Positions 11,536-64,000 of a stretch of 64,000 nucleotides of DNA are shown piece after piece. Each line of letters starts with the position of its first letter. The first letter of the stretch is position 1. The position numbers were made by a program, and so were the translations under genes. A model generated the notes under the pieces. The model saw only the letters and a list, made by a program, of their open reading frames with translations. It was not told the DNA's origin and did not search any database. This stretch comes from Selaginella moellendorffii (taxonomy: Eukaryota > Plantae > Lycopodiophyta): assembly GCF_000143415.4 (NCBI RefSeq), contig NW_003314317.1:602296-666295 (forward strand), written 5' to 3'.

Positions 11536-13735
11536 AACTCTTTGTCATTTTGGTCATGCTTTCGGGGTTCCTTTAGCCTACGACACCTCGGCGAGTTGGT
11601 TCCTTACACATAGCCTCAAGGTATCACACCTTGGCACATTTGGTGTCTCCACACCATTGGCTTCACGAGCCTACCTCTATGACACTTCTTCTTTGTGTCT
11701 AAGTCTCTGCCAAAACCAATACCACTCTTTCTCATGCCAACCATTTGTTAGCACTGCACCATAGAGATCACACACAACTTTGTGTCAAAGTTGTTTTCTT
11801 TTTGGGAACACCTTTCCCACTACTTTAGCATGGCACATTTTGCTATCGATGAAATACCCTCTGTTCTCATCCTTGGATCCTATGATCCCCCCCCCCATCC
11901 TTCGTGGGGTACAACACACCTCAGTCCAAATGCTTCAATCAGTCCTTTTAGGACCATTCCTTGACTCTACTTGAGTCATCCAGCAGTTTTGGACTTGGTT
12001 AATCCATAGACCCGTAAGGCCCCACTTGTGAGGCACTAGCTCACTGGAATACACTTCCTGCATTCCTGTCCTACTCAGAAGGACTATTTTCACAAGTGTT
12101 ACTCTGACACTTGTTTTTGTTCTCTAGGGCAACCTCTGCCCCTTAGGACTACTTGTCCATGTGATGAGAATACCAACTCATCTCTAAGTACACCCCCCAA
12201 CTCCTTGGGTTGTTCCAGCATTTATTAAAGGTAGCCCCGGCTACCATTTCAAGGACTTGAGTCCTCTTCCGTATTTGACCTCCCACGGTCATTACTTCTG
12301 GTCTCACATTCATGAGCACCAACCTCAACTATATGAGGATAATCTTGTGACTCCCTTATTGCTTTGGAGTCTTTATCTTTCCTGTGATCCCAACTTTAGT
12401 TGTTTACCACAACTACATTAGCCATTTACTGAGTCAAACGCTCATCTGGATCACATCCTCAACTCTTTGAGGAAAACCATATACTATTCCCCAGATCCCA
12501 AAGTCGTTCCCTTATCGGCCCCTTTTCTATCCACCACATCGCGCCCAAGTCACGCATGAACTTGAGTGGAGAGCCATGTCCTCTCGGCATGCTACTCCTC
12601 AAGGATAAGCCCACTCCTAAGACCTTCCAATGCCAATATCAATGGTGATATACTTGAGCACCAATAAAATTCGGACTAAGGAACAGCTCCAATACCAAAT
12701 TGTAAGCGACTAAATTTTCCATTTTACTTTAGTCACTTAACCGCACCTCCGACCACTTGGAGGAGTCTCACTCACAACCTCCGTAAGTCCTATTTTGGAC
12801 TTGGGCTTACTAGCCCCGAGAGTGGCATCCCTACCACTCAACTTCGTGCACTTGGTCCAAGTGCTCCACGTGTCCGATCCCATGACCGACACCCCAAGGT
12901 ACCACCAACATATCAGCCTGTTACGCTAAGGCCATGCCTATTCACCTTGGTCACAACGATGGTCTGACACCACCTACATCCCAGTCCCGTCACTCAAAGA
13001 CTGGGCCATCCATCCATGAGTGATCATCCCAGATCCACTCCTTAGCATCCTTAGGATGCCCACCGACATGGGATTAGCCTTCCCCAATATCTCCGTTCCA
13101 GTCCCCACTAAGTCCCTTTTCGTCCATGGCTGTGTTCGCCAACACTGCCACTGGATCGAGGCCCACAGGCCCGACCACTAAGTCCCACAGTCCTCTGGGA
13201 CTTCCTCACCACTCGACTGTGTCCTTGGTCACTACCCCAGAGGACTGCTCCTCTTCCTTTCCAAAGTCTTTGCCTTTGGGACAACATTTCGGAACACCGT
13301 GGCCTTACACGAGCCACCTGGGTACTCTCCCCGCCTTCCGCCCTTGGGTGCTCTAGCCATGGGCTTAGAGCGAGGTTCCGTTGAGCCACGCCTGGTATCC
13401 AAGTAGGTAGTGCCACCCACACTTGGACTGGGAGCATCGGCTAGTCGATCTCCCGGGGGAACTAGAGCCGGCTCTTGAACACTTCACCAAGCTACCCCGC
13501 TTGTCGGTCCGTGTTCACTTTAATTTGGGGCTTCCCAGGGGGCAGCCCCTCCCCCAAACCTGGGTTGGGCCTTCCGGGGCCAAAAGGGCTTTTTCTGGCC
13601 AAAAGGGGTCCCTGGGGGTCCAAACCCCAAACTTTCCCTATAAAATTTTTGGAAACCCCGGAAGGCCCCCCCCCCCCCCCCCCCCCCCCTGGGGGACGAT
13701 CGCTTTGGGCTTTCACCCAACTGCCTGTATTAGTA

Positions 13736-13789
13736 TTCGGACTCGGACTCGGACTCGGACTCGGTCTCGGTCCCGGATTCGGACTCGGA

Positions 13790-13820
<31 letters not shown>

Positions 13821-14250
13821 CCGGTCTCGATTCCATCTCGGACTCCATCTCAGACTCCATCTCGGGTCCATCTCGGACTCCATCTCGGGTCTATCTCGGA
13901 CTCCATCTCGGGTCCATCTCGGACTCCATCTCGGGTCCATCTCGGGTCCATCTCGGACTCCATCTCGGACTCCATCTCGGGTCCATCTCGGGTCCATCTC
14001 GGACTCCATCTCGGACTCCATCTCGGGTCCATCTCGGACTCCATCTCGGACTCCATATCGGACTCGACTTCGGGTCCATCTCGGACTCCATATCAGACTC
14101 CATATCGGACTCCACTTCGGGTCCATCTCGGACTCCATATCGGACTCCATCTCGGACTCCACTTCGGACTCCACTTCGGGTCCATCTCGGACTCCACTTC
14201 GGGTCCATCTCGGACTCCAATTCGGGTCCCCCTCGGACTCCATCTCGGAC
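13736..14250. repeat. Hexamer/12-mer satellite (CTCGGA-CTCCAT, CTCGGG-TCCAT), preceded by a poly-C run at ~13666-13689
   Basis: About 500 bp of tandem CTCGGACTCCAT-type units, which generate spurious SR/GL/MESE-repeat ORFs. Confidence 0.95.
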
Positions 14251-14493
14251 ACTTCCACGTGTCATGTGTTGGTCCTTTTTGGGTCCCTTTTTGGAGCTTT
14301 TCTTATTGGTTGCCTCGTGCTTGCTCCTTGAGCACTTTGTTGGGAGTTCCACTCCCGCTCTCGACCTTCCAAGTCGGAGCTTTTAGTCCAAACATGTTAT
14401 GCTCGTTTGGCTTTCGCTTCCGCCACTACCACGTGGCACCCTTTCCAGCTCCACTTTGGGGGCCTAGGGATTTTGTGTCTCACATAATATTAG

Positions 14494-14623
14494 CATAGTG
14501 GGATTTTGGTAGCCGTCGGATTGGTTTCAATCTAGACCACTTGCTCCTGTATATAAGCTAGGGTTTTTGGGCTAATGGATATGCACATTTCTGTATTCCC
14601 TTTCCATATTCCATGCACTCACA
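14494..14623 (+). repeat. ~120-130 bp short-LTR-like unit; further copies at 19861-19976 and 20053-20181
   Basis: All three share GGGATTTTGGTA...ACCACT...TATATA...TTCCATGCA(C/T)TCACA. The copies at 19861 and 20053 have TG...CA ends. Confidence 0.6.
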
Positions 14624-15384
14624 AAACATATTTAAAAATTATAATATTTCAATTGATCAATTGGATTAATAAATAAAACTATACATAATAACACTGCAAA
14701 CCCAATATAATTTTTATGTTTGGTCACTATACCATCAATAGTCAATGTAAAATCAAATACCTCCAATCAAATTTTATCTCATATGCAAGCACTTTGAGAC
14801 TTTCATACAACATCCTTCTTGAACATCTTTTTAAATTTTAATCTCCTTTGGTGACCCACATTAAACAAAAACTTTGATTAGATGAGCATTCTTAATTGAA
14901 ATAAAATGACATTTTGCAATCTTAGCCCTATATGGCATGTCAAAGTTAAAGAGATTAGCATACTTTTTGAGCTAGTTAATTGTTACAACATTATGATTGT
15001 TCAAGGGATCTGAAGATGGGAATAAAATATCAAAAACAAAACACAATAAAAAGTATGAAGGAGATTAAAATGATGGAAGTAAAGGGAGTGAAATAAAACA
15101 AATGGCATGGGTTTTTTGCTCACTAGAAAAGATAGTATTAAGTCTTGTCTAAAGGGCTCCTTGCTCAATACAATAAAATCTATCAAGTGTTATGGTAAGG
15201 TGAACCAAGTTGGACATAGAACAAAGACAAGCATGCAAGCAGAAGTTACACTATGCTTTAGATTGGTCAATCATACCCAACCTACCCATTATCCCCACTA
15301 TACATTTGGAACCCCTATAGCCTCCCCCCCTTGAAGAACACACACTTTGGGCTTAAGCCTCCCTTAGTATCAAGAATTAGTCTC

Positions 15385-17576
15385 TAGGACAAGCTTGAAG
15401 CTTACTAAGTATGGAATGACCTTAGATTGCGAATTTAGACACGGGACGAACACCATTATATTTAAAACAATTTCTACATTCTATAGATATGCCAAATGAA
15501 CAAATCTAAACACTTTCCATAAATAGCATTTGAGACCAGAATGAAACTAACACAAAGGGCATGATAAGCTATCATATAGCGATTATTGAGAGACCAAGCT
15601 CAATATTGCAGGGGTTCCCAACACTAGCAAGTGTAAGTGAACATCATGAATTTCTCGTCACCATATATACTTGACTAAATGACAATTTAGGATTTCCTTC
15701 CTTAGTGCCCTTAGGAATTCTGTTTTTATGCTCGTCTGGTTTAAATACACTCGAAATGTCCAATTAACTCCACTAGCACAAGAGGGATTGATAAAGGGTC
15801 TAGCAATACTTACCTCCTGCCGTCGTGGCAGTAAGTAAAGAGTGTCCGTAAGGACTAGATAATAGGTAACTTTCAATACCCGAAATCACATTTGCAACAC
15901 TACTAAACAATCCCATTTAGAATACAATTAACTCAACTTGCTACTTAGTTCATTTGAACGTCAATACAATTGTTAATTAGAAAATGCACAAATGCCAATA
16001 ACACAAAGCTACAACTAAATCATCAACACTATCTTTATCAAGACTAATGAAACTCAATATCAATCATAAGGAGAGACATCTCACTTCACTCAAATCTCAA
16101 TACCAATAATGTCAATAATAATGCATCGCTTTAATGCCATCAACACAATAATAAAGCTAATAGAAAGCATGAGTGAATCACTATTCAAATCTCTCTAACA
16201 ACCAAACTAACCAAATTCGAAGATACCTTAATTAATATCTGAGACCAATCTTTCAACAATACTTTGTTTTAGATAACACATCATCAAGAAGTGATTCACC
16301 ATATCTAAAACTCAATGAAATTTAACACTATAGACTAAATGCAACCAAATAATATCGATAGAGGTAGAGTTGATATGCCAATATGGAAAACCCATATAAG
16401 TTTAATGATACAATGCTCCACAATACCATCTGGTAAAACAAGCCTATCACCAATAAAAATTCATTGAGTGAGGCAAGTGTTAACAATCCTTGACAAAGTG
16501 TATAAACAATCACTAAATGCAAAGCAATTAGCAATCACTCTTCAACTTGCTTTCACAAGACCCAAATACTAAACTCATGTCATTGAGTCACATACTTGTG
16601 CAACATGAACGTAATACCTTAGATACAAGATATAGAAATATGAACAAGCATGAACTAAATGACCACTCGAATCCAACTCAACCGTAATAAGCTCACTAAT
16701 GCATTTAGCCAATAGCTCTAAGCATGCTTTAAAGAGGTTAGCTATGCATAATCAATACTTAGTTGAAACTAAAGTGAAGACCATGAGATGGACCTATATT
16801 AATACACAACCTCCTCATAGATAAAGCTATAGGATGGGTACCAATATCTCAATCTTAAACAACTAAATTGGACATCACCATCCTCAACCAAGGCACAAGG
16901 CCACCAAAACCAAGTCAAGATTAATGAAAACTCACTACTCTCATAGAGTTTAATGAAATGTAAAATGCAATCTACTACCAAGCATAATACTACAGAAGAA
17001 AGGCACAAGATCACCCTTCCTAAAAAAATGCAACGACCACTTTTCTACACCAACTTTAGACTCTATCCAATTTAATTGCCTTAGCCCCAAAAGTTAAGAT
17101 CCCTTTCAGGTTACAACATACATACTAAGGTCTAAGCTAACTAAAGTCAACTTCAACCTTTTCACTAGTTTGTACTAGCTTATAAAAACAGAAAAGTTTT
17201 CGGACAAAATGATTAACAGATCAGCTATTGGAAAAGTCTAAGAAAATTTGTGGGAAATTCCATCCTAAAGAAAGAATGACTCTAAGTCCAAGAATGCAAA
17301 CTTTCAAGACTCAACCAACTTCCTCCTACTAACAATTTCAAATAAGTTCACCTCAACACCAATTCTTATGATCCATAATATGCTTAAGCCTCGAACATTA
17401 TGCTCATATTTCTGACATCCAACACCGACATCCGTAAAATGCAAAATGAATATCTAAGACTTGACCACGAAGACCATATCTTCGGATATCTATATTGCAT
17501 TAACACTCTTCTTCAACCACCTTCAAGATCCAATGGAAGCTAAAACACTAACAAGAAAATGACATTGAAAATCAAG
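15385..17576. repeat. Unclassified decayed dispersed repeat; 15385-15900 recurs at 19332-19850 and ~16000-17570 recurs at ~62385-63945
   Basis: Collinear matches, e.g. taggacaagcttgaa..ttactaa at 15386 and 19332, and catcaacacta..taatgaaactcaatatcaatc at 16021 and 62401. No intact ORF. Confidence 0.85.
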
Positions 17577-17789
17577 NNNNNNNNNNNNNNNNNNNNNNNN
17601 NNNNNNNNNNNNNNNNNNNNNNNNNNNNNNNNNNNNNNNNNNNNNNNNNNNNNNNNNNNNNNNNNNNNNNNNNNNNNNNNNNNNNNNNNNNNNNNNNNNN
17701 NNNNNNNNNNNNNNNNNNNNNNNNNNNNNNNNNNNNNNNNNNNNNNNNNNNNNNNNNNNNNNNNNNNNNNNNNNNNNNNNNNNNNNNNN
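17577..17789. other. Assembly gap (213 N)
   Basis: Run of N. Confidence 1.
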
Positions 17790-20700
17790 ACTTAGGATAA
17801 TGGATCACCATTGAGAATCTAGTCAAAGCTATTCCAATGCTATTACATGCAAGTAAACTAGCTTCACTATCAATCATTTTGGGGTTGATCATCGAATAAC
17901 CAAGCAACTTCGTAAACACATTGTTCATTATCACATAGATATGATATAAGTATCACAATGACTTAATCATCAATTAAGAAACACCACGAGCAACACCTAT
18001 ATCATTACTTCAAAGGTTTATATAACTATCAAGTGCCAATTCAATACGATAAAATGCAACATAAATGCCACATTCCACCAATAGAAATTTACAACACCCA
18101 ACACTATTAACTTTTGTTCACAACATGGACAAGCTCATGCCACTCTCTTTTCGACTAAACTCAAAACTAATCCAACATCAAACTACTCAAGGAGCAATAG
18201 CAAGGTTCTTCAGAAAAGAATTAAATATTGCAACCCAAGTCTTTCAATAGTAAGCCTAGACAAAATGGTTTAGCGCTTCATTGCTATCCATCCCAAAACT
18301 CACCATTTATAAAACAATTATAACCAAGATGCATCAAAATAGAAACTCTTGATTGCATAATGTGAACACGGGTAATGAGTTAACATATCATTACAAATCA
18401 TCTCTCCAAAAAGAGAAGATAATTTATGTGTCTGATCCTTCATTTCTGATGATTCTTTTTTCGATCTCATCTTTGACTAAACCTTAAGCTTATGTTTGCA
18501 CTACCTTCAGTCCAATCCAAGAAAAGTTTATGAGAGAGCACAACAATGACTACTTGAACCAATAGACTAATCCCTACAGTCTTTATTGACCCACTTATAA
18601 TCATGCCTAGGAAGGATCCACTAGTGCCGTGCTAAATAGCTATAGACCAGCCTATTTACCACTCAAAGCAAACCCAAGGGAGGTTTTACTTTCACCCATG
18701 GTACATGGAACAACTCATGGAACCACCAATAGGTTAACATTAATCCTGCTAACTCAAAGTGTAACCTCGAGTTGCTAATGCACCTCACTCACGAGCCCAA
18801 GCAAACTTATGTTAATATGCCTCATTCATGAGCCCAAATGTAAACTCATGTAAATAGAGCATCTTAGTCCATCTTATGAGCCCAAGAGCAAATGGTATAA
18901 AAAGGTAACCAAAATTTATACCCAAGGAACAATTACGTAGCCTTTGCACTCAAATGTGTACTCACTCAGATTATCATTTTCATCTCTACATAACGAGACT
19001 AATTGCCCAATCTTATTGAATAGTACTCGTTGAGACTCTACCTCAGATACCAAATGTAGCACACATAGTTTTTACCCTTTACCCTATGGTGATTTTCCAT
19101 AGAATAACCACGAAGTGGAACATAAACCTTTATGTGCCATGTGTTATATGCCGTATAACACATGCCACATGTCCAATGGACAGTGGTGCGAAACCCGAGC
19201 TTCAAGGCCTTGGACCATTGAATGAAGGAATGGAATTAAACTCCTAAGCATGGGGCTAAGGAGCAACGGAATCAAATGGATGCTCTAGGATTGTTCCAAG
19301 TTACTTCGTGCTCCTGTCCCTTTGCTCCAATTAGGACAAGCTTGAAACTTACTAAATATAGAATGTCTCTAGATTACGAATTTAGACACAGAATGAACAC
19401 CATTGTATTCAAGATAATCTCTACATTCCATAGATATGCTAAATAAACAAATCTAAATACTTTCTATAAATAACATTTAGGACTGAAATGAGACTAACAC
19501 AAAGGGCATGATAGGAAAGGTGTTTGGCAGACACAATAAGCTATCATCTAGCAAATATTAAAGGACCAAGCTCAATATTGCAGAGATTCCCAACATTAGC
19601 AAGTGCAAGTCAACATCATGAGTTTCTCGTCACCGTGTTAAGTATGGTTGACTAAATGATAACTTAAGATTTCCTTTTTTAGTGCATTTCCAGTTTAAGT
19701 GCACATGTGATAACCAGTTTTTCAACTAGTTTAGGCGAAGACTAATAAAGGATTCAGCAATACCAACCTCCTACTGTCGTGGCAGTAAGGAAAGAATATC
19801 TGAAAAAACTAGCTAATAGGTAACTTTTGATACCCAAAGTCACATTTGTGGCAATATTAATGTAGTGAGATTTTAATAGCCATCAAATTTGTTTTCATTT
19901 ATACCACTCACTTTTGTATATAAATTATAGTTTTCTGGTTAATCATTATATATTCCATTTATTCCATACACTCACAATATTATATATATATTAATAATAT
20001 TAATAATTTAACAAAATAATAAATTAATTTGTGAGGTACAAGTTAATGCTATTGTAATGGGATTTTGGTAACTGTTATATTGCTTTCAATCCAAACCACT
20101 CACTTATATATATAAATTCAAGTTTTGGGCTAATTAATATGCATATTCATGTATTCCATTTCCATATTCCATGCATTCACATTAGTGGAGTTATCCTTAA
20201 GGAGTGCTTAGATTTGAGATTTTGGTTTAGATTTATCTTTTACATCATTTAAATCTCACTTTCTTTATAACTTTTTAAATTCCTTCTCTTTTACTTTTTT
20301 TCCTTTTCATTCATCTTCATGGGAGAGCAGTAGCCTCCTCCTCCTTTGACCAGCAAGAGTTGATGTAGTTACTTGATGCTATCTAGTTGCAATTGAATAA
20401 TTAAATGCAATTGATAGTAGCATTCATGGTGTGTGGTATAACTCTTTTTGCTCTTATTGCCAATCCTTATGGAGTTCTTCTGTAGGGATGATGTGTACCA
20501 TTGATTTAATCACTTTATGGTGATTGCCATTTATCATTCTAAAGATAATGCTCGGCATTATTGTGAGTTTCTCATATATCTCTAAATGATAATATTGCAA
20601 TAGTATAATGGTTTGAGTGTAGCCACTCTTGTCAACTGTTGTTTGAGTTGGTAATGCAATTTAGTGTTTGCTTCTTGAGCCTCTTGCTTCGTGTGGAACT

Positions 20701-46792: not shown

Positions 46793-49700
46793 ATGGAAAT
46801 GGCGCAAGAACTGCTGGACGGACCGCTGCACGAGATCAAAGAAACCAGTAAGTATGATTTCCACTTCAACACCCATCAGTGCCAGTACCTGCAAAGCCGA
46901 TGCTCCGTGGTCGAAGAATACGTGCGGCTTTGGCAGAGCTGCTCCGAGCTTGAGCCACTTCCCCTGGCCATGGAGGAGCTCCGTTGTATGCTGAACAGAG
47001 CCTTGCAGCTTCTCAAGCAGTGCCAGCACGAGGAATGGCTGTACCATGCTGCAGTCCGGCTCACTGATTCCAGAGCCTTTGCGGAGATCTGCTGGTGTCT
47101 CAGTAGATTGACGGCCTTGGTCAATGCTCACATGATCCATTCTGCCATGGATATTAGGAGTCCCAATGTACAGTGCCTCATGGCTATGCCTTACAAGCGC
47201 AAGCACATAGAGAACCTGCGTTCGGCAATGGAGGACCTGAGTCCCTGCACATCAAGAGACAGAAAGGAGCTCTTCGTGAGAGCAAATTCCATCGGAGAAA
47301 CTGACGGCAGGTATGGTCTGGCACAGTACCTTGTTGAGAAGCTGCTGTCAAGCGGAGGAGGAGCACTTCCTACCATTCAGGCCCTCGAACTCAAGACTCT
47401 GATAGGTGCGGGGGCATTTGGTTCCGTGTACAGGGCTGAATGGCTGGGGGCACCAGTTGCTGTGAAAGAGTTTAAGAGCGGTGATGCTTCATTCGACAAG
47501 GAGGTGAACATCCTGAAAGAACTTATTTCAGAACCGCACCCGAGCGTGCTCCAAATGATAGGATACTATCAGAAGGATGAGAAGGCTTACCTTGTCATGG
47601 AGCTGATGGAAAGAGATTTGGCCAACGTTATAAGGAAGACTCGAGGTTCGCTGCAACTTTTAACTTCTATAGACATCATGCTCCAGATTGCGAGCGGCAT
47701 GAGCTACCTCCATCAAAAGAATGTGGTTCATCGAGACCTCAAGCCTTCGAATATCCTGGTTAAGACACAGAACCATGCCTGCACCACCTGTTCCAACGTG
47801 AGGTTAACAGACTTCGGAGTCTCAAAGTCGAACTTTATAAGCTTTGCACCGGACTTGTCTTACCAGAGGGGGACGATCCAATACATGGCTCCAGAGATGC
47901 TGAGGGGTCAGAAGTACTCCAGAGAAGTTGACGTGTACAGCTTTGGAATTACTTGCTTCCAGATCCTGACTGGAACGCTGCCATTTCAGGACGATGGCAA
48001 GCAGCTGGTGGCAGATAAACTGGTCGAGACGATCGAAGATGGAAATAGGCCCGACCTTCCAACAGGCTGTCCACTGGAGCTGGTTGCTCTCCTCAACAGG
48101 TGCTGGAACAGGAATCCGAAAGATAGACCAACCTTCGAACACATATCCAGGATGCTGTGGTCGCTAAAAGAAAGGTTGCTTGGTGGCCACAACCTCGAAT
48201 CCAGCTTCACAGGCAGTGAGATGTCCAGTTGCAACGCTGCGGAAGAGCTCACACTCGCTGCAGGAGATATGATCTGCCAGATTTCAGTTGCTGCTCCGTT
48301 CACAAATTTTCACCAGTGCTACTTCTTGCAGTCGAGGTGCAAGCAGATTTCCAGCTACCGCGAATTTCCGAATAAGCTGCGCCTTCGTTCATGGTTTGCC
48401 GTTCAGATAAAGCTGGTGACTACCTTGAGAACTGCGTTGTCGCTGATAGAATCTTACAGTGAAGAGAGGTGGCTGCATACGGCGGTGCTGAAAGAGCATA
48501 ACCCGTGGGCGTTCAGAAAAGCTCTTGAAGATATCAACAGATGTGAAACCACACTGAGAGCCATAAACCCCGGCAACCACAGCGATAACGTGATGACGTT
48601 CCCCGCTGTTCCTGAGCAATATGCGGAAGATGATAAAAAGAGAATGGCGGAAAGCATTAAAGGCTTACTCGATGCATCGGACCGGGTGACGGTTAAGTTT
48701 GCAGAATATTTGGTTCAAAAAGCAGCTTTTGATTCAGTGTTACCATGCATCGATCCAGAGGAAATCGTACTGCTCAATTTCATAGGAATGTCAAACCATG
48801 GGACGATATTTGCAGCAAGATGGCTAGACGTACCTGTGATGGTGAAAGCCCTTGGAACAGGAAATGAAGCTGAAAAGCTCCTGAAGGAGCTTGACAAGCG
48901 GCACGCAGAACTTATAAACAGGCCCCATCCAAATGTAGTGCAAGTTATCGGCTACACAAGGCACGGGGAAAACCTGTTCGTGGTGACCGAGCGGGTCTCT
49001 GGAGGCGACTTCCGAGTGACAAAGTTCCCTCTTGTATTGACCATCGAGATCCTGCTTCAAGTTGCTCAAGGCGTGGCCTACTTGCACGAACATAACCGCG
49101 AGCTCTCGGACTTGAATACGCTGCTGGTGGACTTTGAAAAAGGCCACTTCGACGAATTCACCGGTGGCATCACTGTCAAAGTTCAGGCACAGTCCAACCT
49201 CAGAAAACGAGATGGACCAAATAGCTTGAGTACCTTGGCTGGAAGGTGGAAGCATCCGTTCCACTTCCCTCACGTGCCAGACGCGGACTGCGGGAAGATC
49301 GACGCGTACAAGTTTGGTATAGCCTGCGTAGAAATGATCACCGGACAAACCATCGGGGAAGAAATACTGCTCTCTGGAAAACTACCGCAACTCCCTCACG
49401 ATTGCACGGGAATCAAGGCTGTGATAGAGAAATGCCTGAGCTCGCAGCCTCCGGGCTTCCATCAAATCGTGGAACTCCTGCAATCAGCTCAACTTAGACT
49501 GGAGATTCCGCCTACAAGCGACATAGACTACCGACGGATGCTTCTGGACTCCAGCGCTCAAACTGGACTCAAGCTCGACATAACGGGAGACGCAGTAATT
49601 GGTGGCAAGCTCATTGCTGTTGGAAACGTAGAAAATGTGGGTAACAGGCTCTACCAGTGGATCCGTCAGCACAAAGATGGAACTATAGAGCGGTTGCGGC

Positions 49701-50218
49701 CATTTCTCGTGACGGAGTTGGACTCTGGGACACTGGAGTATGATCTAACAGCCGACGACTTCAACAAGGCGATCTCACTCACTTACGTGGATATGAACGA
49801 AAAGATCGAAGTTTCCGGCAGAGAAACCACGAACAGTCGATGGGTTTCCTATAGTGACACTATGAAGCGGGCGCTAAAGATGATATGGGGTGCTGGCGAG
49901 GCCAAGTTCAAGGTTTTGCAGCTAAGGGAAGAAGAAGGGAGCAAGAAGAGCTACCTGGTGATTAGACGGCCGCATTGCATGCTGGAGTGGAAGCGCTACT
50001 ACTTGAAAAGGATGGAGATCAAGATCGCGTTCACCTCCCCGGCGGCCGGCATCAAAATATCCGAGGAGAATCCGCAAATTTGCCAGCTGATCGATAACGG
50101 CGGCGCGGAGGCCTGCAAGATCCGATTCAAGAACGCGTTCGAGAGAGACTTGGCGGTGCTTACCTTCCGGCATTTCTTGCGCGCCTGTGAGAAGGGGAAG
50201 CGCTCGCGACGACGATGA
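46793..50218 (+). CDS. Intronless tandem-kinase protein: [MLKL/MCAfunc-like helical bundle + active TKL kinase] + [helical bundle + pseudokinase] + Ig-like/PH-like C-terminus
   Basis: Single ORF of 1141 codons from ATG 46793. Kinase 1 has IGAGAFGSVY, VAVK, HRDLKPSN, DFG and YMAPE; kinase 2 lacks HRD and DFG. The motif N.HQC..LQSRC...L..AL.L......WL..A occurs twice. C-terminus: ITGDAVIGGKL..YQWIR...EYDLTADD...RDLAVLTFRHF. Confidence 0.9.
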   Translation: MEMAQELLDGPLHEIKETSKYDFHFNTHQCQYLQSRCSVVEEYVRLWQSCSELEPLPLAMEELRCMLNRALQLLKQCQHEEWLYHAAVRLTDSRAFAEICWCLSRLTALVNAHMIHSAMDIRSPNVQCLMAMPYKRKHIENLRSAMEDLSPCTSRDRKELFVRANSIGETDGRYGLAQYLVEKLLSSGGGALPTIQALELKTLIGAGAFGSVYRAEWLGAPVAVKEFKSGDASFDKEVNILKELISEPHPSVLQMIGYYQKDEKAYLVMELMERDLANVIRKTRGSLQLLTSIDIMLQIASGMSYLHQKNVVHRDLKPSNILVKTQNHACTTCSNVRLTDFGVSKSNFISFAPDLSYQRGTIQYMAPEMLRGQKYSREVDVYSFGITCFQILTGTLPFQDDGKQLVADKLVETIEDGNRPDLPTGCPLELVALLNRCWNRNPKDRPTFEHISRMLWSLKERLLGGHNLESSFTGSEMSSCNAAEELTLAAGDMICQISVAAPFTNFHQCYFLQSRCKQISSYREFPNKLRLRSWFAVQIKLVTTLRTALSLIESYSEERWLHTAVLKEHNPWAFRKALEDINRCETTLRAINPGNHSDNVMTFPAVPEQYAEDDKKRMAESIKGLLDASDRVTVKFAEYLVQKAAFDSVLPCIDPEEIVLLNFIGMSNHGTIFAARWLDVPVMVKALGTGNEAEKLLKELDKRHAELINRPHPNVVQVIGYTRHGENLFVVTERVSGGDFRVTKFPLVLTIEILLQVAQGVAYLHEHNRELSDLNTLLVDFEKGHFDEFTGGITVKVQAQSNLRKRDGPNSLSTLAGRWKHPFHFPHVPDADCGKIDAYKFGIACVEMITGQTIGEEILLSGKLPQLPHDCTGIKAVIEKCLSSQPPGFHQIVELLQSAQLRLEIPPTSDIDYRRMLLDSSAQTGLKLDITGDAVIGGKLIAVGNVENVGNRLYQWIRQHKDGTIERLRPFLVTELDSGTLEYDLTADDFNKAISLTYVDMNEKIEVSGRETTNSRWVSYSDTMKRALKMIWGAGEAKFKVLQLREEEGSKKSYLVIRRPHCMLEWKRYYLKRMEIKIAFTSPAAGIKISEENPQICQLIDNGGAEACKIRFKNAFERDLAVLTFRHFLRACEKGKRSRRR

Positions 50219-53085: not shown

Positions 53086-53424
53086 TATGCTTGATGCATT
53101 TCTCCTTTGAACTTATGGATTGAAAACTTCAGACCAAATGATCATGCAAACAGACTTCTTGTGCAGGCCATGCTAGCACAGCAATTGGTGATTTGTGCAA
53201 CAATTTTGGTGGACGGCATTTATGTATGTTCCAACTTTTCATGTATCATGATCAGTACCATGGATTTCGGAAATGATTGTGAAAACGCACTTGTAACCTC
53301 TGTGCTAGCATGGACGTCTATCACGATATCTTCATCTTCTATTTCACAACACATTATATACATCATTTGTTTTCTTGGGATTGAGACATGTCTCCATGAA
53401 CTCCAAAAAAATAATAAACGACTG

Positions 53425-53882
53425 ATGGCACTCACGTCAGTGAGCCGTATCCCACACTGACACATAAATTTCCGTCACTTCTATTGTCTTGACAAGGTTA
53501 ATTGACTTGGTGAAGATGGAAATGGTGCAAGAACTGTTGGACGGACCGCTGCATGAGATCAAAGAAACCAGTAAGTAGGATTTCCACTTCAACACCCATC
53601 AGTGCCAGTACCTGCAAAGCCGATGCTCCATGGTTGAAGAATATGTGCGGCTTTGGCAGAGCTGCTCCGAGCTTGAGCCACTTCCCCTGGCCATGGAGGA
53701 GCTCCATTGTATGCTGAACAGAGCCTTGCAGCTTCTCAAGCAGTGCCAGCACGAGAAATGGCTGTACCATGCTGCAGTCCGGCTCACTGATTCCAGAGCC
53801 TTTGTGGAGATTTGCTTGTGTCTGAGTAGATTGATGGCCTTGGTCAATGCTCACATGATTCATTGTGCCATGGATATTAGGA
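53425..53882 (+). pseudogene. Truncated duplicate of the 5' region and first helical-bundle domain of the 46793 tandem kinase
   Basis: Near-identical to ~46699-47160; TAT>TAG stop at 53576; ends at an LTR remnant. Confidence 0.92.
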
Positions 53883-53889
53883 GCAATAC

Positions 53890-56800: not shown

Positions 56801-59800
56801 GTCGGAGGCATTCGCCTCGATGAAGAAAGGTTGTGAGGGATCAGCATGGATCAAGATGGGAGCAAAACTGAAGGCCACCTTGAGTGTGTTGAAGGCCTGC
56901 TAGGTAGCAACAGACCAAGAGAAGGGAACATCCTTGTGAGTGAGATGTGTGAGAGGAAGGACAATGTCAGAGTAGTGATCAATAAATTTGCAGTAGAAGT
57001 TGGCGAAGCCAAGGAAAACCTTGGCAGGATCCATCATGATACCCTCAAGAATGACAATGTACCCAAGGAACTCCACATACTCTTGATTGAAGGAACATTT
57101 CTCAAGCTTTGTGTATAGGCCATGTTCCTGTAGCTTTACCAACACCTTGCGCGCATGCTCGTCGTGCTCCTCCTGAGTTTTTGAGTAGATGAGGATGTCG
57201 TCGAGGTAGACGATCACCATCTAATCAAGAAACTCCTGAAAGACATTGTTCGCCATGTGTTGGAAAACTGTTGGAGCATTTGTCGAGCCAAACGGCATGA
57301 CAGTGTACTTGAAGCAGCCACAACGGATTCAGAACGTAGTCTTCCATTCATCGCCAGGCCAAATCCGAATCAGGTTGTATGCTCTGTGGAGGTCGATCTT
57401 GGTGAAGAAGCAGGCACTGTCGAGGCGTTCCAATAGGTTTGAGATCAGGGGTAGTAGATAACAGTTCCAAACAATTACCTTGTTCAAACCTCGGTAGTCG
57501 ATGACTAGCCGCAAACTCCTATCCTTCTTTTTGAAAAGAAGATAGGTGCTCCAGCCGGGGACTGCGAATGCTGAATATACCCCGATGCAAGGCTCTTGTT
57601 CACATACTCTTTGAGGGCATTAATCTCAGATGGGGATAACTCGTAGATAGACCCCCATGAAGGTGACACTCCTTCCTATAAATCAATAGGACAGTTGTAA
57701 GGCCGATGAATAGGTAGTACACTAGCTTTTTTTTTGTCAAACACATTGCCAAAATCATGATACTTCTCAGGAAGACTGACAGGAGAAACATGCAAAGCAA
57801 AAAGAAAAACAAGTTCTTCATGAAGGAGTTCTTTCATAGTGATTGTGGAGATAGGAGGAGGCGTACAGGTGAATGGAATGATGGGACGAGGATATTGTCT
57901 AGTGTAAGATGGAAGAGAGGGAAAAGAAGATTGAGGGATATGGAGCAAAGAAGGTGAAAACTTCGTAGATTCAAGAATAGAAACCCGATTTGAGTTTAGG
58001 GAACTTTTCTTGATTTGGATTCGATGAACAACAAGGGAAGACGTGGGAGATGGTGACGTGGGAGAGACGAACTATAATTCCTTCCAACAGATTTGAGGCT
58101 GGTGCAATTGGAACCAAGGAAGGCCGAGCACCACAGAGGAGGATGTTGTTGATGATGTTGTTGATGTTGAAGGCAATATTAGTGACAGTGGACCCGATGT
58201 GTACTCGAATAGGCAACGTTTCTCTAAGTCCAAAAGATGGAGACACAAAATGCTCGCCGATGCCTTCAACCCTCAGATCCCATATGGTAGGAGAAAAAAG
58301 AACGTGATGTCAGGCAGCAAAGTTCGTGTCCATGAAGCAAGAAGTTGCGCCCAAGTCCAGTAGTGCTAGAGCCTTGAGTCCTAATTATCCGGTGAAAGAA
58401 ATGAGACATGGGATGTGGAAGTTGTGGGAATTGGTGGTGGCTTTGATGAAAGGTGGTAAGGAGCTTGATAAAGAAGAAAGTGATTTTATTTGGGGAGTCC
58501 AAACAGATAGGTCCTACTTTTTTTGGACATAGTCTTTTTCTGACTGCAACAGAGGTGGACCTTGAGGCAGAGTGAACTCAAGTAGTTGGGGAGGCTTCTT
58601 GGGACACACAATTGCTTTATGGATCAGTACAGTAGAGGCAAAGATTCTGAGATACTCGACGTTGCTTCTTAGTAGGACTCAACTTCCCTCTGATGAGTCG
58701 GGGAGTACCAGAAATATCCATCGGAACCAGAGCAGTAGGTTCAGAAGTATGCCCCAAAGACTCAAGCTGGGATTCTTGAGTCTCAGACGGGAAAACAGTG
58801 GCACAGTGACTTTCCTGATGATGTTCAAAGAGACGATTGTTGCATTGAACAGCTTTGTTAATGGCGTGCAATGGGTCCATGGGATCCTCCATGGTTAGCA
58901 ACAAATCCTTAACACCATTGTTGAGGCTGAAACGAAATTGATCAATCAGGGCCAGCTCATCCCATTGAGTGTCCAAGGCAAGGAGTTGGAACTCCGCAGC
59001 ATAGATCGAGGCAGGATAAGACCCTTGAGAGAGACGGCTCATCTTTGTGGTGGCAGCCCAAAATTGATTCGTTTCGCCAAAACATGCTTCGAGCTTCTCT
59101 TTGAACAACTGAAGATCCATCAGCTTCAGAACCATGACCTTTTTCATGCTCTTCTCTAGGAGAGGAGAAAACCATGACAAAGCTGCACCTTCGAGCAACA
59201 TCCCAATCGTGCCGATTTGAGACTCGGGAGTGGGGTACTGCCGATGTTGAAGTGCAAAGATCAGCTCCATTTGGTTCAGAAATCCGCGAAGCTCCGAATG
59301 CTTGCCTGAAAATTTCGCCGGGAAACTCACCTTCGATTCAAGAACTCTACTTGATCCTTGAGCCGAAAGTGAAGCAAGCTCCTATTGCATGTGAAGAAGG
59401 GCCACCTTCAACTTGGTATTCTCAGACTGGATTTTTGCAAGGACTTCAGCCAAAGAATCAAGATGGCTTGGAGACTCCATCAACAAAGAAGAAAGAAAAG
59501 GGGGAAAAAGGCAAAGGCAATCAAACAATCAAACGAGTTAAAGCAAAAGCAAAAAGCACAATTTGAATCAAATTGTCAAGACCCCTAACAAGATCAAAAC
59601 TGGAAAATGCAAAAGACAAAGAGAAAAGCTAGTGAAGACGAAGAAAAAGCCTTAGACTGGCGTTGATTCAAATTGTGGAAAAATGGAACAAGGCTAGCCT
59701 ATATATACTATAGGTTGATAAGGCTCCACCACTCTTGGATCGAGGACAGCCTAAATATAGCTGAGGTCGAAGAGCCGCCATATCATCATCAGGAATATGG

Positions 59801-60369: not shown

Positions 60370-61100
60370 GTGTTTATCCATGTTTACTTGGATCTAAAGC
60401 CAAACTCCATAGTGTCAGACTTTATTTGGCTTCATTTTGTGTGTTAATCTTGGCATTGGATATAATATGCTCTAGGATTATTCTTTTGTCGCTCTATGCT
60501 TTTGTCCTTTTGCTCTTTGGGTTGAATGCTTAAAAGTCACTTTGTATTCCAGTTCCTTTGCTCCTTGGCTACATGCTTGGGGGTTTGGCTTTATCACTTT
60601 ATTCAGTGGCTCAAAGCCTTAAAACTTATGTTCTACTCCATTGCCCTTGGCATGTAGCCAAAAGTTAATGTTTTATTTCGTGGTTATCCTATAGTAAATC
60701 ATTATAGGATAAATAGTGAAAACCATATATGTTATAGTCAGCAGAGTTTAAATTTTGCATTAAAACATGTAGAATATATAATTTTCACCCTCTACCCTAT
60801 GGTGATTTACGATTTACCATAGGATAATCACGGAGTAGAACCATATACCTTGGATATGTGGCCAAAGGCAGTGGAGTGGAACCCAAGTGTCAAGGCCTTT
60901 GGACACTAAACAAAGGGACATAGCCAAACTCCTAAGCATACAACCAAGGAGTGAAGAAATTAAATCACGAAATGACTCATGAAGGTACAACTTAGAGAGC
61001 AAAGGGACAAAAGCATAAAGTGATATTAGAACAGTTCTAGAACATTTAATATACCAATGATAAGACCAGCATAAGACCCATATCATTACATTAGGCCACT
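60370..61100. repeat. Long imperfect inverted repeat (arms ~60370-60710 and ~60795-61100); one arm also related to 19070-19270
   Basis: e.g. atgcttttgtccttttgctct (60496) vs agagcaaagggacaaaagcat; cgtggttatcctatagtaaatc (60678) vs gatttaccataggataatcacg (60811). Outer limits approximate. Confidence 0.8.
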
Positions 61101-62384
61101 AGTATGCTGAAGTAGTGTTAAACATTATTTGGCTCCATTTTATGTACTAGCTAACATGGTATGAAACTTATGTTAAGGTTTGGCACTTTAATCCTTTTCC
61201 TTTTTGTGGCTTTGCTCATGTCCTAAGCTCTCTCTCCATGCTCTAGCTTAAGACACAAAGCGTAGAACCCCTTGATATTTTTGCTTTTGCGGGGTTTTAA
61301 TACAACCATTTGGAATATTTCAAGAATCAAAATATTCCCTCTCTCTCTCTCAAGATGCCCATGGCTGCAACAATTGGGCTTAAACCCAAGCCAAACATAA
61401 AATAAGGGCAAGTATATAAGCAAGGAGCTAGAACTCAAGCAACTTCTCTTGCATTTGTTGTTGTTGCTAAATGATCTCCTTATATCTTGCAAGCTTCAAC
61501 AACACCTTCTCAATAATTAAGGGAATTATATCATCACTATATACGGCTAAAGAAGAATGGACCATAGTAGCATATAAGCTCCTATCAAAAGATGGGAGAA
61601 AAACCTCCTCTACCATATAAATCTTAAGCTCTTAGAAAAGATCCCACTCTAAAGTTTCTATTATAGTGAATGCCTTATGATATGTTTAAAACTCTCACTT
61701 GAACATCTTGGGCTGGAGATTTCCCTTGAGGCTAAAGATGACTGCAATGATGCTATGAGGTTCATTTGTGATGACCTTATGCTAGACACACTCTTTCCAA
61801 TAAGACCTAAACAACATCACGTACTCTAGCATAAATTCCCGTGCCCCTTGCCAAAAAGTGAACAAGTTCATAAGTAAGCGATTCATTCGTCGCTACTAAT
61901 CAAAGTCACCTTGAAAAGATGCTTTGAATGTGGAGTAGTCAGACATGTCTACCTCCAAGAGAGTCTCTACCCATGCTACTCCTCGGCTAGTGAGCAATCA
62001 CAAGAAGTCACAAAACTTGTGATTATCCTTGACAATGCCATTCAATTCACAATATTGCTTGAAGTGACATATACCTTGGTGGAGATGTCACCATTATCAT
62101 AGAAGTATGCCAAGTTAGTGCTTTGTTGTGGCATATGTATAGGAAGAGCCATGGGCAGTAAACTCCCTAACTCGGCATTTATGATGAACAATGAATCCTC
62201 CTCTTTGGAAAGATATTCAAATGAGCTGGGTTGCAAGTTGAGTTAATTGTGTTCTAGACAAGATTGTTTAGTACAGGTTGAGCTTTGATTTTTTCCTAAA
62301 AAGTGATTTAGTTGTGGACAATGTTAACTCTACAAGAGGAAGAGTTGGTGATCAATATTGGAGTGTTTGAATCTCCAATAACAT

Positions 62385-64000
62385 AAAGTTACAACCCAAG
62401 CATCAACACTATTTACATTGAGATTAATGAAACTCAATATCAATCCCATGGAAAGACATTTCATCCCACTTGAATCTCAACAATAATAATGTCAACGGCA
62501 AGACATCACTTCAATGCCATCAACACCAGAACAAAACTAAAAGAAAGCAAGAGTGAATCACCACCAAAAACTTTTTAACAACCAAGCTAACCAAAGTCAA
62601 AGATACCTTGGTTAGTATCTGAGACCAACCTTTAACAAACTCAGTTACAGATAACACATCATCAAGGAGTGATTCACCATATCCAAGACTCAATGAAATC
62701 TAACACTACAGACTAAACACAACCAAAATGACATTGACAAAGGAATTGATTTGTTCACATGGAAACCATGTAAGTCTAATGACACGATCCTCCGCAACAC
62801 CATCTGGTAAAGTAAGTCTATCATTGCTAAATCATCATCGAGCGAAGTGTCAATAGTCTTTGATGAAATCTACAAGCAATCATTAGTTGCAAAGCAACTA
62901 GCAATCACTCTTCAATTTGCCTTTCACAAGACCTAAACACTAAACTTACGTTATCAAGTCATATACTTGTCCAATATAAACGTAATACCAGGTATGAGAT
63001 AAAGGTTTATGGACAAGCATAAACTAAATAACCACTCAAATCTAACTCTACCACAATAAGCTCACCAACACGTTTAGTCAATAGCTCTAAGCATGCCTTG
63101 AAGAGGCTAGTTATGCATGATCAACACTTAGTCAAAATTAAAGTGAAGACTATGAGATGGACTCATATTGGTACACAACCTCCTCATAAACAAAACTATA
63201 GTATGGGTACCAACATCTCAACCTCAAACAACTAAGTTGGCCATCACCATCCTCAACTAAGGCGCAAAGCTACCAAGACCAAGTCAAGATCAGTGAAAGT
63301 TCACTACTCTTATAGAGTTTAATGAAATGCAAAGTGCAAGTTGCTACTAAGCAAAATACTATAAAAGAAAGGCATAAGGGCTACCTTTCTAGAAAAGTGC
63401 AACGGCCACTTTTCTACACCAACTCCAGACTTTATCCAACTCAATTGCTTTTAACCTCAAAAGTCAGCATCCCTTTTGAGCTGCATTATACAAACTACTT
63501 ACTAAGATCTAAGCTAACTAAAATCAATTCCAACCCTTTCACTAGTTTATACTGGCTTAAGAAAACTGAAAGGTTTTCAAGCAAAATAATCAACAAATCA
63601 GCCATTGGAAAAGTCAGAGAAAATTTGTGGAAATTTTCCATCCTAGAGAAATAATGACTCTCAGTCTAGGAATGCAAACTTTCAAGACTCAATCAACTTC
63701 ATCCTATTTACAACTTCACATAGGTTCACCTCAACACAAATTTTCATGACCCAGCAGTATGTTAAGCATCGAACATCTTTGCTCATTTTCCAACATCCAA
63801 CACCAACATCCACAAAATGCAAATTGAATATCTAAGGCTTGATCACGAAGACCACATCTTCAGATATCTACATTGCACTAACACTCTTCTTCAACCACTT
63901 TCAAGATCTAACATGAAGCCAAAACATTAATAAGAAAAATGACATATCAAGGTCTAAGGAAAATCCCTCATCACTCAAAATAACAATACTAGTTCCACTA
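62385..64000. repeat. Second copy of the unclassified decayed repeat at ~16000-17570
   Basis: Collinear similarity throughout; runs off the window end. Confidence 0.85.

Follow-up and report, generated by a model that had tools for sequence, protein, structure and literature searches.

In animals and in Arabidopsis, helical bundles of the MLKL type bring about membrane damage or Ca2+ influx. The Arabidopsis MLKLs (AtMLKLs; AtMLKL3 is PDB entry 6KA4) are pseudokinases that are conserved across seed plants and act in cell death and immunity through the bundle (10.1101/681015). MLKL-like proteins with active kinases work in cereal immunity (PMC11297308; 10.64898/2026.08.07.743466), namely Pm13, an MLKL-K whose kinase is of the receptor-like kinase (RLK) LRR_8B type and which is a recent fusion stated to be restricted to the Poaceae (PMC11297308), and the helper MLKL R3AK, which executes cell death (10.64898/2026.08.07.743466). 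Tandems of a kinase and a pseudokinase make up an established class of receptors. For the tandem kinases of cereals a kinase-pseudokinase decoy model is available, and the domains integrated into these proteins are established effector baits (PMC8761531). Here we analyzed a 64,000-nucleotide stretch of DNA from the lycophyte Selaginella moellendorffii (contig NW_003314317.1, positions 602,296 to 666,295 of the forward strand; hereafter the window), in which positions 46793-50218 of the plus strand form one uninterrupted open reading frame (ORF) of 1141 codons, from the first ATG at 46793 to a stop codon ending at 50218. The opposite strand of this interval holds just short chance ORFs and nothing comparable. 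The predicted product is a tandem MLKL-like protein with the domain order four-helix bundle (4HB) with brace, predicted-active kinase, 4HB with brace, pseudokinase and fused Ig-PH module.

Domain architecture of the predicted protein

The first 900 or so residues consist of two related units. Residues 26-462 match residues 505-903 in a single alignment that runs through the helical part and the kinase (27% identity, BLASTP E 1e-31), and the helical parts of the two units also match each other when compared alone (BLASTP E 1e-7). Pfam recognizes a strong kinase domain at residues 198-455 (PK_Tyr_Ser-Thr) and a weaker second kinase stretch. Kinase 1 keeps all catalytic motifs, that is the G-loop GAGAFG (residue 205), the beta-3 lysine in VAVK (222-225), the catalytic loop HRDLKPSN (313), DFG (340) and APE (366), and AtMLKL3 and AtMLKL2 are its best natural PDB matches by sequence. 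The G-loop of unit 2 reads GMSNHG, HRD is degenerate, and DFG and APE are absent, leaving the beta-3 lysine context VMVK and one aspartate in the catalytic loop (LSDLN). The C-terminal ~247 residues (895-1141) show no relation to unit 1 or unit 2. The product reads as cytosolic, with neither a signal peptide nor a transmembrane segment apparent. The protein thus has the two kinase-like domains of a tandem kinase protein, a kinase and a pseudokinase in one cytosolic chain, and in its Ig-PH tail an additional integrated non-kinase domain. An initial annotation of the locus had proposed a duplicated helical domain plus kinase, with all catalytic motifs in unit 1 and a pseudokinase in unit 2, followed by an unrelated C-terminus of ~240 residues, and all of this agrees with the alignments; the sequence motifs that it quoted are real and, in two alignments, conserved among relatives.

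To examine the helical domain, residues 1-195 were folded with AlphaFold2 (AF2) from a 19-sequence alignment. The model (predicted local distance difference test score, pLDDT, 85.5; predicted template modelling score, pTM, 0.82) shows four long helices (residues 2-18, 27-49, 57-76 and 93-121), which form the bundle, and then two more, brace-like helices (142-165 and 174-186). A VIA-align comparison of this unit-1 model with 48,161 representative chains placed the N-terminal domain of human MLKL first (Z 12.9, root-mean-square deviation (rmsd) 3.3, 147/152 residues), mouse MLKL second (Z 10.6) and AtMLKL3 of Arabidopsis third (Z 10.2). The alignment to AtMLKL3 pairs model residues 1-195 with chain residues 1-287 over 188 residues and reaches through the brace. 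The first unrelated chain scored Z 9.2, and the plant coiled-coil (CC) and CC-R domains of NRG1.1, Rx and MLA13 lay at 6.7-7.7. With Foldseek, AtMLKL3 (probability 0.99) and AtMLKL2 (probability 0.94) ranked first and second among 350,542 chains, and the human MLKL executioner domain ranked fifth (template modelling (TM) score 0.53/0.69). Profile-profile comparison with a DUF1221/MLKL_N-positive group gave a probability of 77% (E 2e-5). A profile of the N-terminal domain that included moss and alga relatives had residues 13-151 of mouse MLKL as its top PDB match (E 0.023), which we take as supporting evidence only, because it depends on having moss and Klebsormidium sequences in the profile, and one of these bears Pfam MLKL_N.

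Several results weigh against an MLKL-type fold. A Selaginella-only profile of the N-terminal domain found no MLKL match among PDB sequences, and the product has no Pfam match to DUF1221 (PF06760), even at E up to 10, to MLKL_N (PF22215/cd21037) or to MCAfunc. Moreover, the structural search tool itself notes that helical bundles can reach Z values of 10-13 by chance, and the fold call therefore rests on the agreement of several lines. A sub-threshold Pfam match to DUF7792 was seen at residues 41-103, a word-based homology search with the N-terminal domain alone retrieved three Selaginella copies only, and an atlas fold search with the bundle model was uninformative, its matches being weak ones to bacterial helical proteins (TM ≤0.48). 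Taken together, these lines of evidence suggest that the helical domain of unit 1 is very probably an MLKL-type bundle, and homology to unit 1 suggests the same for unit 2. The HeLo/four-helix-bundle fold typical of plant MLKLs is present in the unit-1 model and is assigned to unit 2 through homology only, and brace helices stand, as in plant MLKLs, between bundle and kinase-like domain. The initial annotation had described both helical domains as MLKL/MCAfunc-type bundles and had proposed modelling of the N-terminal repeat as a check: the repeat does model as an MLKL bundle in unit 1.

The tail was searched with an exhaustive HMMER pass of residues 890-1141 against 1.84 billion cluster representatives (E up to 1e-3), which returned only 15 proteins, including the product of the gene itself. 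The majority are proteins of ~600-900 residues from the streptophytes Physcomitrium, Sphagnum, Riccia, Psilotum, Spirogloea and Selaginella, which end in IG_AIR9 plus DUF7046 and carry the label 'AIR9-like A9 domain-containing protein'; the tail aligns end to end with these A9 plus DUF7046 C-termini, and the alignment takes in the RD..VLT motif at the very end. Among the proteins that this search found with the tail, those bearing a kinase came from S. moellendorffii only. By phmmer (best E 6e-11) the tail is tied to proteins that lie above the thresholds of both IG_AIR9 and DUF7046; in the tail itself IG_AIR9 stays below threshold at residues 927-1003 (E 1.3e-4, 22.2 bits vs a cut-off of 27.5) and DUF7046 has no direct Pfam match. 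The tail model (pLDDT 77.6) consists of a beta-sandwich, then a helix, seven strands and a long C-terminal helix. In both Foldseek and VIA its top structural match is the fused Ig-PH module of SCAB1 (4dix_A; Foldseek E 5.8e-9; VIA Z 15.2, rmsd 4.3, 189/212 residues), and dozens of canonical PH domains match its second half at Z 10-13; a protein atlas search with the tail gave no usable match. We conclude that the tail is a fused Ig-PH module, homologous to the A9 plus DUF7046 end of a streptophyte family, which is what the initial annotation had anticipated in likening it to the C-terminal part of plant coiled-coil proteins, with its AIR9-type Ig and PH-like domains.

Table 1. Features of the tandem gene and its surroundings, in window coordinates
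Feature	Residues	Position	Strand	Basis
Complete intronless coding sequence, allele of LOC112344817	1-1141	46793..50218	+	ORF, annotation, locus alignment
Unit 1 four-helix bundle, MLKL/HeLo-like (predicted)	1-121	46793..47155	+	AF2 model, VIA, Foldseek
Unit 1 brace-like helices	122-195	47156..47377	+	Model helices, AtMLKL3 alignment
Kinase 1, catalytic motifs intact	196-462	47378..48178	+	Pfam E 1e-66, motifs
Unit 2 helical domain	477-659	48221..48769	+	Homology to unit 1 bundle and brace, alignment, local hidden Markov model
Pseudokinase 2	660-894	48770..49474	+	Pfam kinase E 2.5e-9 on this piece, motif comparison
A9-type Ig-like beta-sandwich	929-1000	49577..49792	+	Sub-threshold IG_AIR9, model strands, SCAB1 match
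PH-like domain	1022-1140	49856..50212	+	Helix, seven strands and long C-terminal helix; equivalent to DUF7046 of relatives
Dead partial duplicate of the gene's 5' end		53393..53884	+	~120 nt upstream and first ~123 codons

Paralogues, relatives and genomic setting

S. moellendorffii has three full-length loci with the doubled order bundle-kinase-bundle-pseudokinase-IgPH, all with intact ORFs and catalytic motifs kept: the window gene, a copy ~52 kb away on the same reference scaffold (L001, copy B), and a copy on GL377621.1 with a continuous ORF of 1143 codons (L005, 5995-9426). A public model at the last locus, SELMODRAFT_422394 (P0003, 1028 aa), skips ~113 residues of the kinase-1 core. We considered it as a structural variant without this core and rejected it, since the L005 DNA is one continuous ORF; the short model is an annotation artefact and looks like the product of a false intron.

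More distant relatives show other arrangements. Single-unit proteins of S. moellendorffii (P0014, P0130/P0159) have the order bundle-kinase-IgPH, proteins of the moss Ceratodon (P0006, P0007, P0008, P0010, P0011) are of the bundle-kinase-kinase type, and a protein of the fern Adiantum (P0013), which passes Pfam DUF1221, has the order DUF1221-kinase-kinase. The alga Klebsormidium has an MLKL_N-kinase-Sel1-LRR protein (P0022, Klebsormidium nitens, 1118 aa) that barely passes Pfam MLKL_N (27.2 bits vs a cut-off of 27.0). The family is therefore multi-copy and varied in architecture across plants. The swapped C-terminal domains that the initial annotation had suggested looking for among the paralogues were not found; the Ig-PH tail is common to all members of the Selaginella clade, including single-unit paralogues that are just 20-25% identical. 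As the tail is present in such deeply diverged single-unit relatives, it was gained once and early in this clade and is ancestral to the clade as a whole. In a tree of whole units the Selaginella units all fall on one side of a split with 93/90 support, and the unit 2 branch is very long. This topology is consistent with a duplication of the unit inside the Selaginella lineage followed by fast divergence, with poorly supported branching within the clade.

Two side observations concern the relatives. P0022 combines MLKL_N and a predicted-active kinase with Sel1 repeats and leucine-rich repeats (LRRs), that is, recognition-type repeats on an MLKL-type bundle. Two proteins of Ceratodon purpureus (P0004 and P0005, 1414 and 1479 aa) have four or five kinase-like stretches each, which is above the usual tandem pair.

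Catalytic motifs are mostly kept in members from non-seed plants, and all of them are kept in P0014, P0130, P0022, P0178, P0017 and P0013. The seed-plant DUF1221 protein P0114 (Ilex) has the degenerate pattern K to R, HGD and GFG, which is the published pseudokinase pattern. Because intact motifs occur in a lycophyte, mosses, a fern and Klebsormidium, the sequences suggest an active kinase as the ancestor of the plant MLKL-like proteins. In the literature, plant MLKLs are seed-plant pseudokinases (10.1101/681015) and active MLKL-K proteins are confined to grasses (PMC11297308). Here, bundle, brace and kinase proteins with intact motifs are seen in a lycophyte, mosses, a fern and an alga, and the Selaginella trio adds two features of which we found no description, the duplication of an entire bundle-kinase unit and the SCAB1-like Ig-PH tail.

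The three tandem paralogues (synonymous divergence, dS, 0.08-0.14) are under purifying selection, with ratios of nonsynonymous to synonymous change (dN/dS) of 0.36-0.38. By domain, dN/dS and the share of variable residues are 0.38-0.54 and 16.9% for the bundle plus brace of unit 1 (N1), 0.19-0.25 and 8.6% for kinase 1, 0.21-0.43 and 13.7% for N2, 0.63-0.66 and 16.6% for the pseudokinase, and 0.33-0.43 and 7.7% for the tail. Variable residues are thus concentrated in N1 and the pseudokinase (~17%) as against kinase 1 and the tail (~8%). An earlier three-way comparison had given 0.49-0.63 for the pseudokinase and, for the PH part by itself, ~0.1. When the window copy is compared with copy B, the tail (49475-50215) has a dS of 0.044 vs 0.11-0.16 in the rest of the gene, which may reflect gene conversion over the 3' end.

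The predicted product is 99% identical (16 substitutions) to that of S. moellendorffii LOC112344817, publicly labelled 'uncharacterized protein' only. Since the window and the LOC112344817 locus on scaffold GL377571.1 share 97.6% DNA identity across 17.8 kb, the window represents this locus in another haplotype or assembly. The annotated span of LOC112344817 is 3426 nt, exactly 1141 codons plus the stop, and the gene is accordingly without introns. In the public annotation of the same locus, four upstream genes have DNA spans far above the need of their products, namely those for Whirly (263 aa in 1226 nt), an MFS transporter (586 aa in 2516 nt), GrpE (331 aa in 1834 nt) and a Cys/Met-metabolism enzyme (516 aa in 2243 nt). 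The initial annotation, made from the letters alone, had thus been correct in seeing an intronless gene amid intron-rich conserved genes and in placing it in a non-seed plant.

A partial duplicate of the gene's 5' end lies 3.3 kb downstream (Table 1). It is 89-92% identical to its source, has an in-frame stop at codon 21, loses similarity abruptly beside repeat DNA and is also present in the reference haplotype (L002, 16683-17142); it is the relic of an aborted or broken duplication. Repeat or transposon DNA at window positions 13700-14500, 15200-20400, 58620-59330 and 60400-64000 also occurs in the flanks of a paralogue. Near 13.7-14.5 kb it forms an internally repetitive block, and at 58620-59330 the minus strand holds a gag ORF from a retrotransposon; the paralogous copies of the tandem gene are likewise embedded in DNA rich in transposable elements (TEs).

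Possible function and competing explanations

The protein belongs to a Selaginella-expanded clade of a streptophyte superfamily of the type helical bundle, brace and tyrosine kinase-like (TKL) kinase, which includes the seed-plant MLKLs of the DUF1221 type. We regard the architecture and this family placement as highly probable. A cell-death or immune mechanism, which we derive from analogy, is a tentative proposal, and the immune role is offered as a hypothesis, not as a result. As a whole, the statement that the window holds a real, intact gene for a tandem MLKL-like protein with an autoinhibited cell-death or immune mechanism is the explanation that we favor, and we consider it somewhat probable.

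The proposed mechanism is modeled on animal and Arabidopsis MLKL, wheat Pm13/MLKL-K and the kinase-pseudokinase receptors of cereals. At rest the protein would be autoinhibited, with the kinase-like domains holding the bundles, and the more variable pseudokinase unit could serve as regulator or bait. Activation through kinase 1 would release bundles and braces to oligomerise, the PH-like tail may help to position the protein at a membrane or cortical site, and the output would be ion flux, cell death or defence signalling. Because S. moellendorffii is reported to have ~2 receptors of the nucleotide-binding leucine-rich repeat type (NLRs) (PMC3782705), the immune reading is attractive, though this number is no test of it.

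Three points count against such a mechanism. The Pm13 bundle alone does not kill cells (PMC11297308), and a bundle fold is for that reason no proof of executor activity. Positive selection was not seen in any domain, the highest dN/dS being 0.66 and none exceeding 1 in comparisons of three or four sequences. Finally, no NLR or other immune genes were found among the window ORFs of at least 200 aa, which is a weak test in an intron-rich genome.

The high conservation of the tail and its presence in all members of the Selaginella clade favor a different explanation, in which the protein is a signalling kinase that is associated with a membrane or the cytoskeleton and serves development or the response to abiotic stress. 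Its tail would constitutively localise it or bind partners, as in SCAB1 and AIR9-like proteins, its helical domains would only regulate or dimerise it, and its kinase 1 would phosphorylate substrates. This non-immune role is a serious rival, which we nevertheless judge somewhat unlikely. The closest solved relative of the tail, SCAB1, is a plant actin regulator. Its Ig-PH module is described as an atypical phosphoinositide-binding site (PMC10730221). AIR9, after which the A9 domain is named, is a division-site protein that binds microtubules; kinase 1 is intact and the most constrained domain, and the flanking genes are housekeeping genes. On the other hand, the bundle is specifically MLKL-like and not a generic coiled coil, and the kinase-pseudokinase tandem, the recent copy expansion, the dead partial copy and the variable bundle and pseudokinase are common in immune families.

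Another explanation makes the protein a self-contained sensor, kinase and executor in which the Ig-PH tail is an integrated decoy that mimics a host target of effectors. The precedent of the cereal tandem kinases, with their integrated baits, is in its favor, and so is a free-standing Selaginella family with the same Ig-PH module (SELMODRAFT_443175), the pattern expected of a decoy's model. The tail is, however, not swapped among paralogues and occurs in single-unit relatives at 20-25% identity. Found throughout the clade and varying less than most of the protein, it looks more like a module for constitutive targeting or interaction than like a bait that was swapped in recently. We therefore consider a decoy tail quite improbable, and the initial reading of the protein as an all-in-one immune receptor with an integrated decoy appears partly weakened by the conservation and clade-wide presence of the tail.

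That the sequence is non-functional or mis-assembled, for example a retrocopy drifting to a pseudogene, might be supposed from an intronless gene in an intron-rich neighborhood, with TE-rich surroundings and a dead 5' fragment 3.3 kb downstream, but this is largely refuted and barely credible, as the 3.4-kb ORF is intact in both haplotype or assembly versions and in two further paralogues, dN/dS is 0.34-0.38 with the catalytic motifs kept in all copies, and intron poverty looks like a family trait given that the single-unit relative P0130 is intronless as well.

Returning to the autoinhibited MLKL-like mechanism, a further-reaching version of it, which we think unlikely, would be that in a plant reported to have about two NLRs intracellular sensing and execution fall mainly to this expanded clade of MLKL-like proteins, which are catalytically competent. 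In the tandem form, unit 2 would be bait or regulator, kinase 1 would fire, and the two bundles, steered by the PH-like domain, would permeabilise the membrane. If true, this would be an NLR-independent single-chain immune device and would give a view of MLKL-like proteins before seed plants made them pseudokinase helpers. An immune role, if true, would also be informative on early vascular plant defence, in a species that is reportedly nearly without NLRs. As an intronless modular protein, the product offers a compact test case for the gating of an MLKL bundle in cis by a pseudokinase unit and for its aiming at membranes by a PH-like domain.

Comparison with described systems

Among the open-access papers and preprints searched, we saw none that describes these Selaginella genes, an MLKL-IgPH fusion or any tandem MLKL-like protein, and the arrangement bundle-kinase-bundle-pseudokinase-IgPH was not found elsewhere in the databases and literature covered. 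Its parts can nevertheless be compared with four groups of described proteins.

The tail has the same fused Ig plus PH fold as SCAB1 and the coiled-coil proteins ending in A9 plus DUF7046; these proteins lack a kinase, and their N-terminal parts are coiled-coil or actin-binding.

With the plant MLKLs (AtMLKL1-3, of the order DUF1221, brace and pseudokinase; 6KA4, 6LBA) the protein shares a four-helix bundle and brace at the N-terminus followed by a TKL-type kinase fold. It differs from them in that the kinase of unit 1 has all catalytic motifs, whereas the AtMLKLs are pseudokinases, in that the whole bundle-kinase unit is tandem-duplicated, and in that a folded Ig-PH module takes the place of the serine-rich tail at the C-terminus. 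The DUF1221 signature of Pfam is absent here, the link being one of profile-profile comparison only, and the published family is described in seed plants only, whereas the present host is a lycophyte.

Pm13 MLKL-K and R3AK resemble the Selaginella protein in that a single chain joins a bundle of the MLKL type and a brace to a Ser/Thr kinase predicted or demonstrated to be active. An immune cell-death role has been shown for those two proteins. In contrast to Pm13, the kinase of the Selaginella protein is MLKL/TKL-like, the protein comes from the lycophyte lineage, and it carries a second unit and the Ig-PH tail.

The cereal tandem kinases (Rpg1, WTK1/Yr15, WTK3/Pm24, WTK4 and Rmo2) resemble it in being cytosolic proteins with a duplication-derived kinase-pseudokinase tandem and an extra non-kinase domain. 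In those proteins only the kinase is duplicated, whereas the duplicated unit in Selaginella takes in the helical bundle too; moreover, the Selaginella kinases are not RLK/Pelle-derived, and the extra domain is an Ig-PH module in place of HMA, vWA or MSP.

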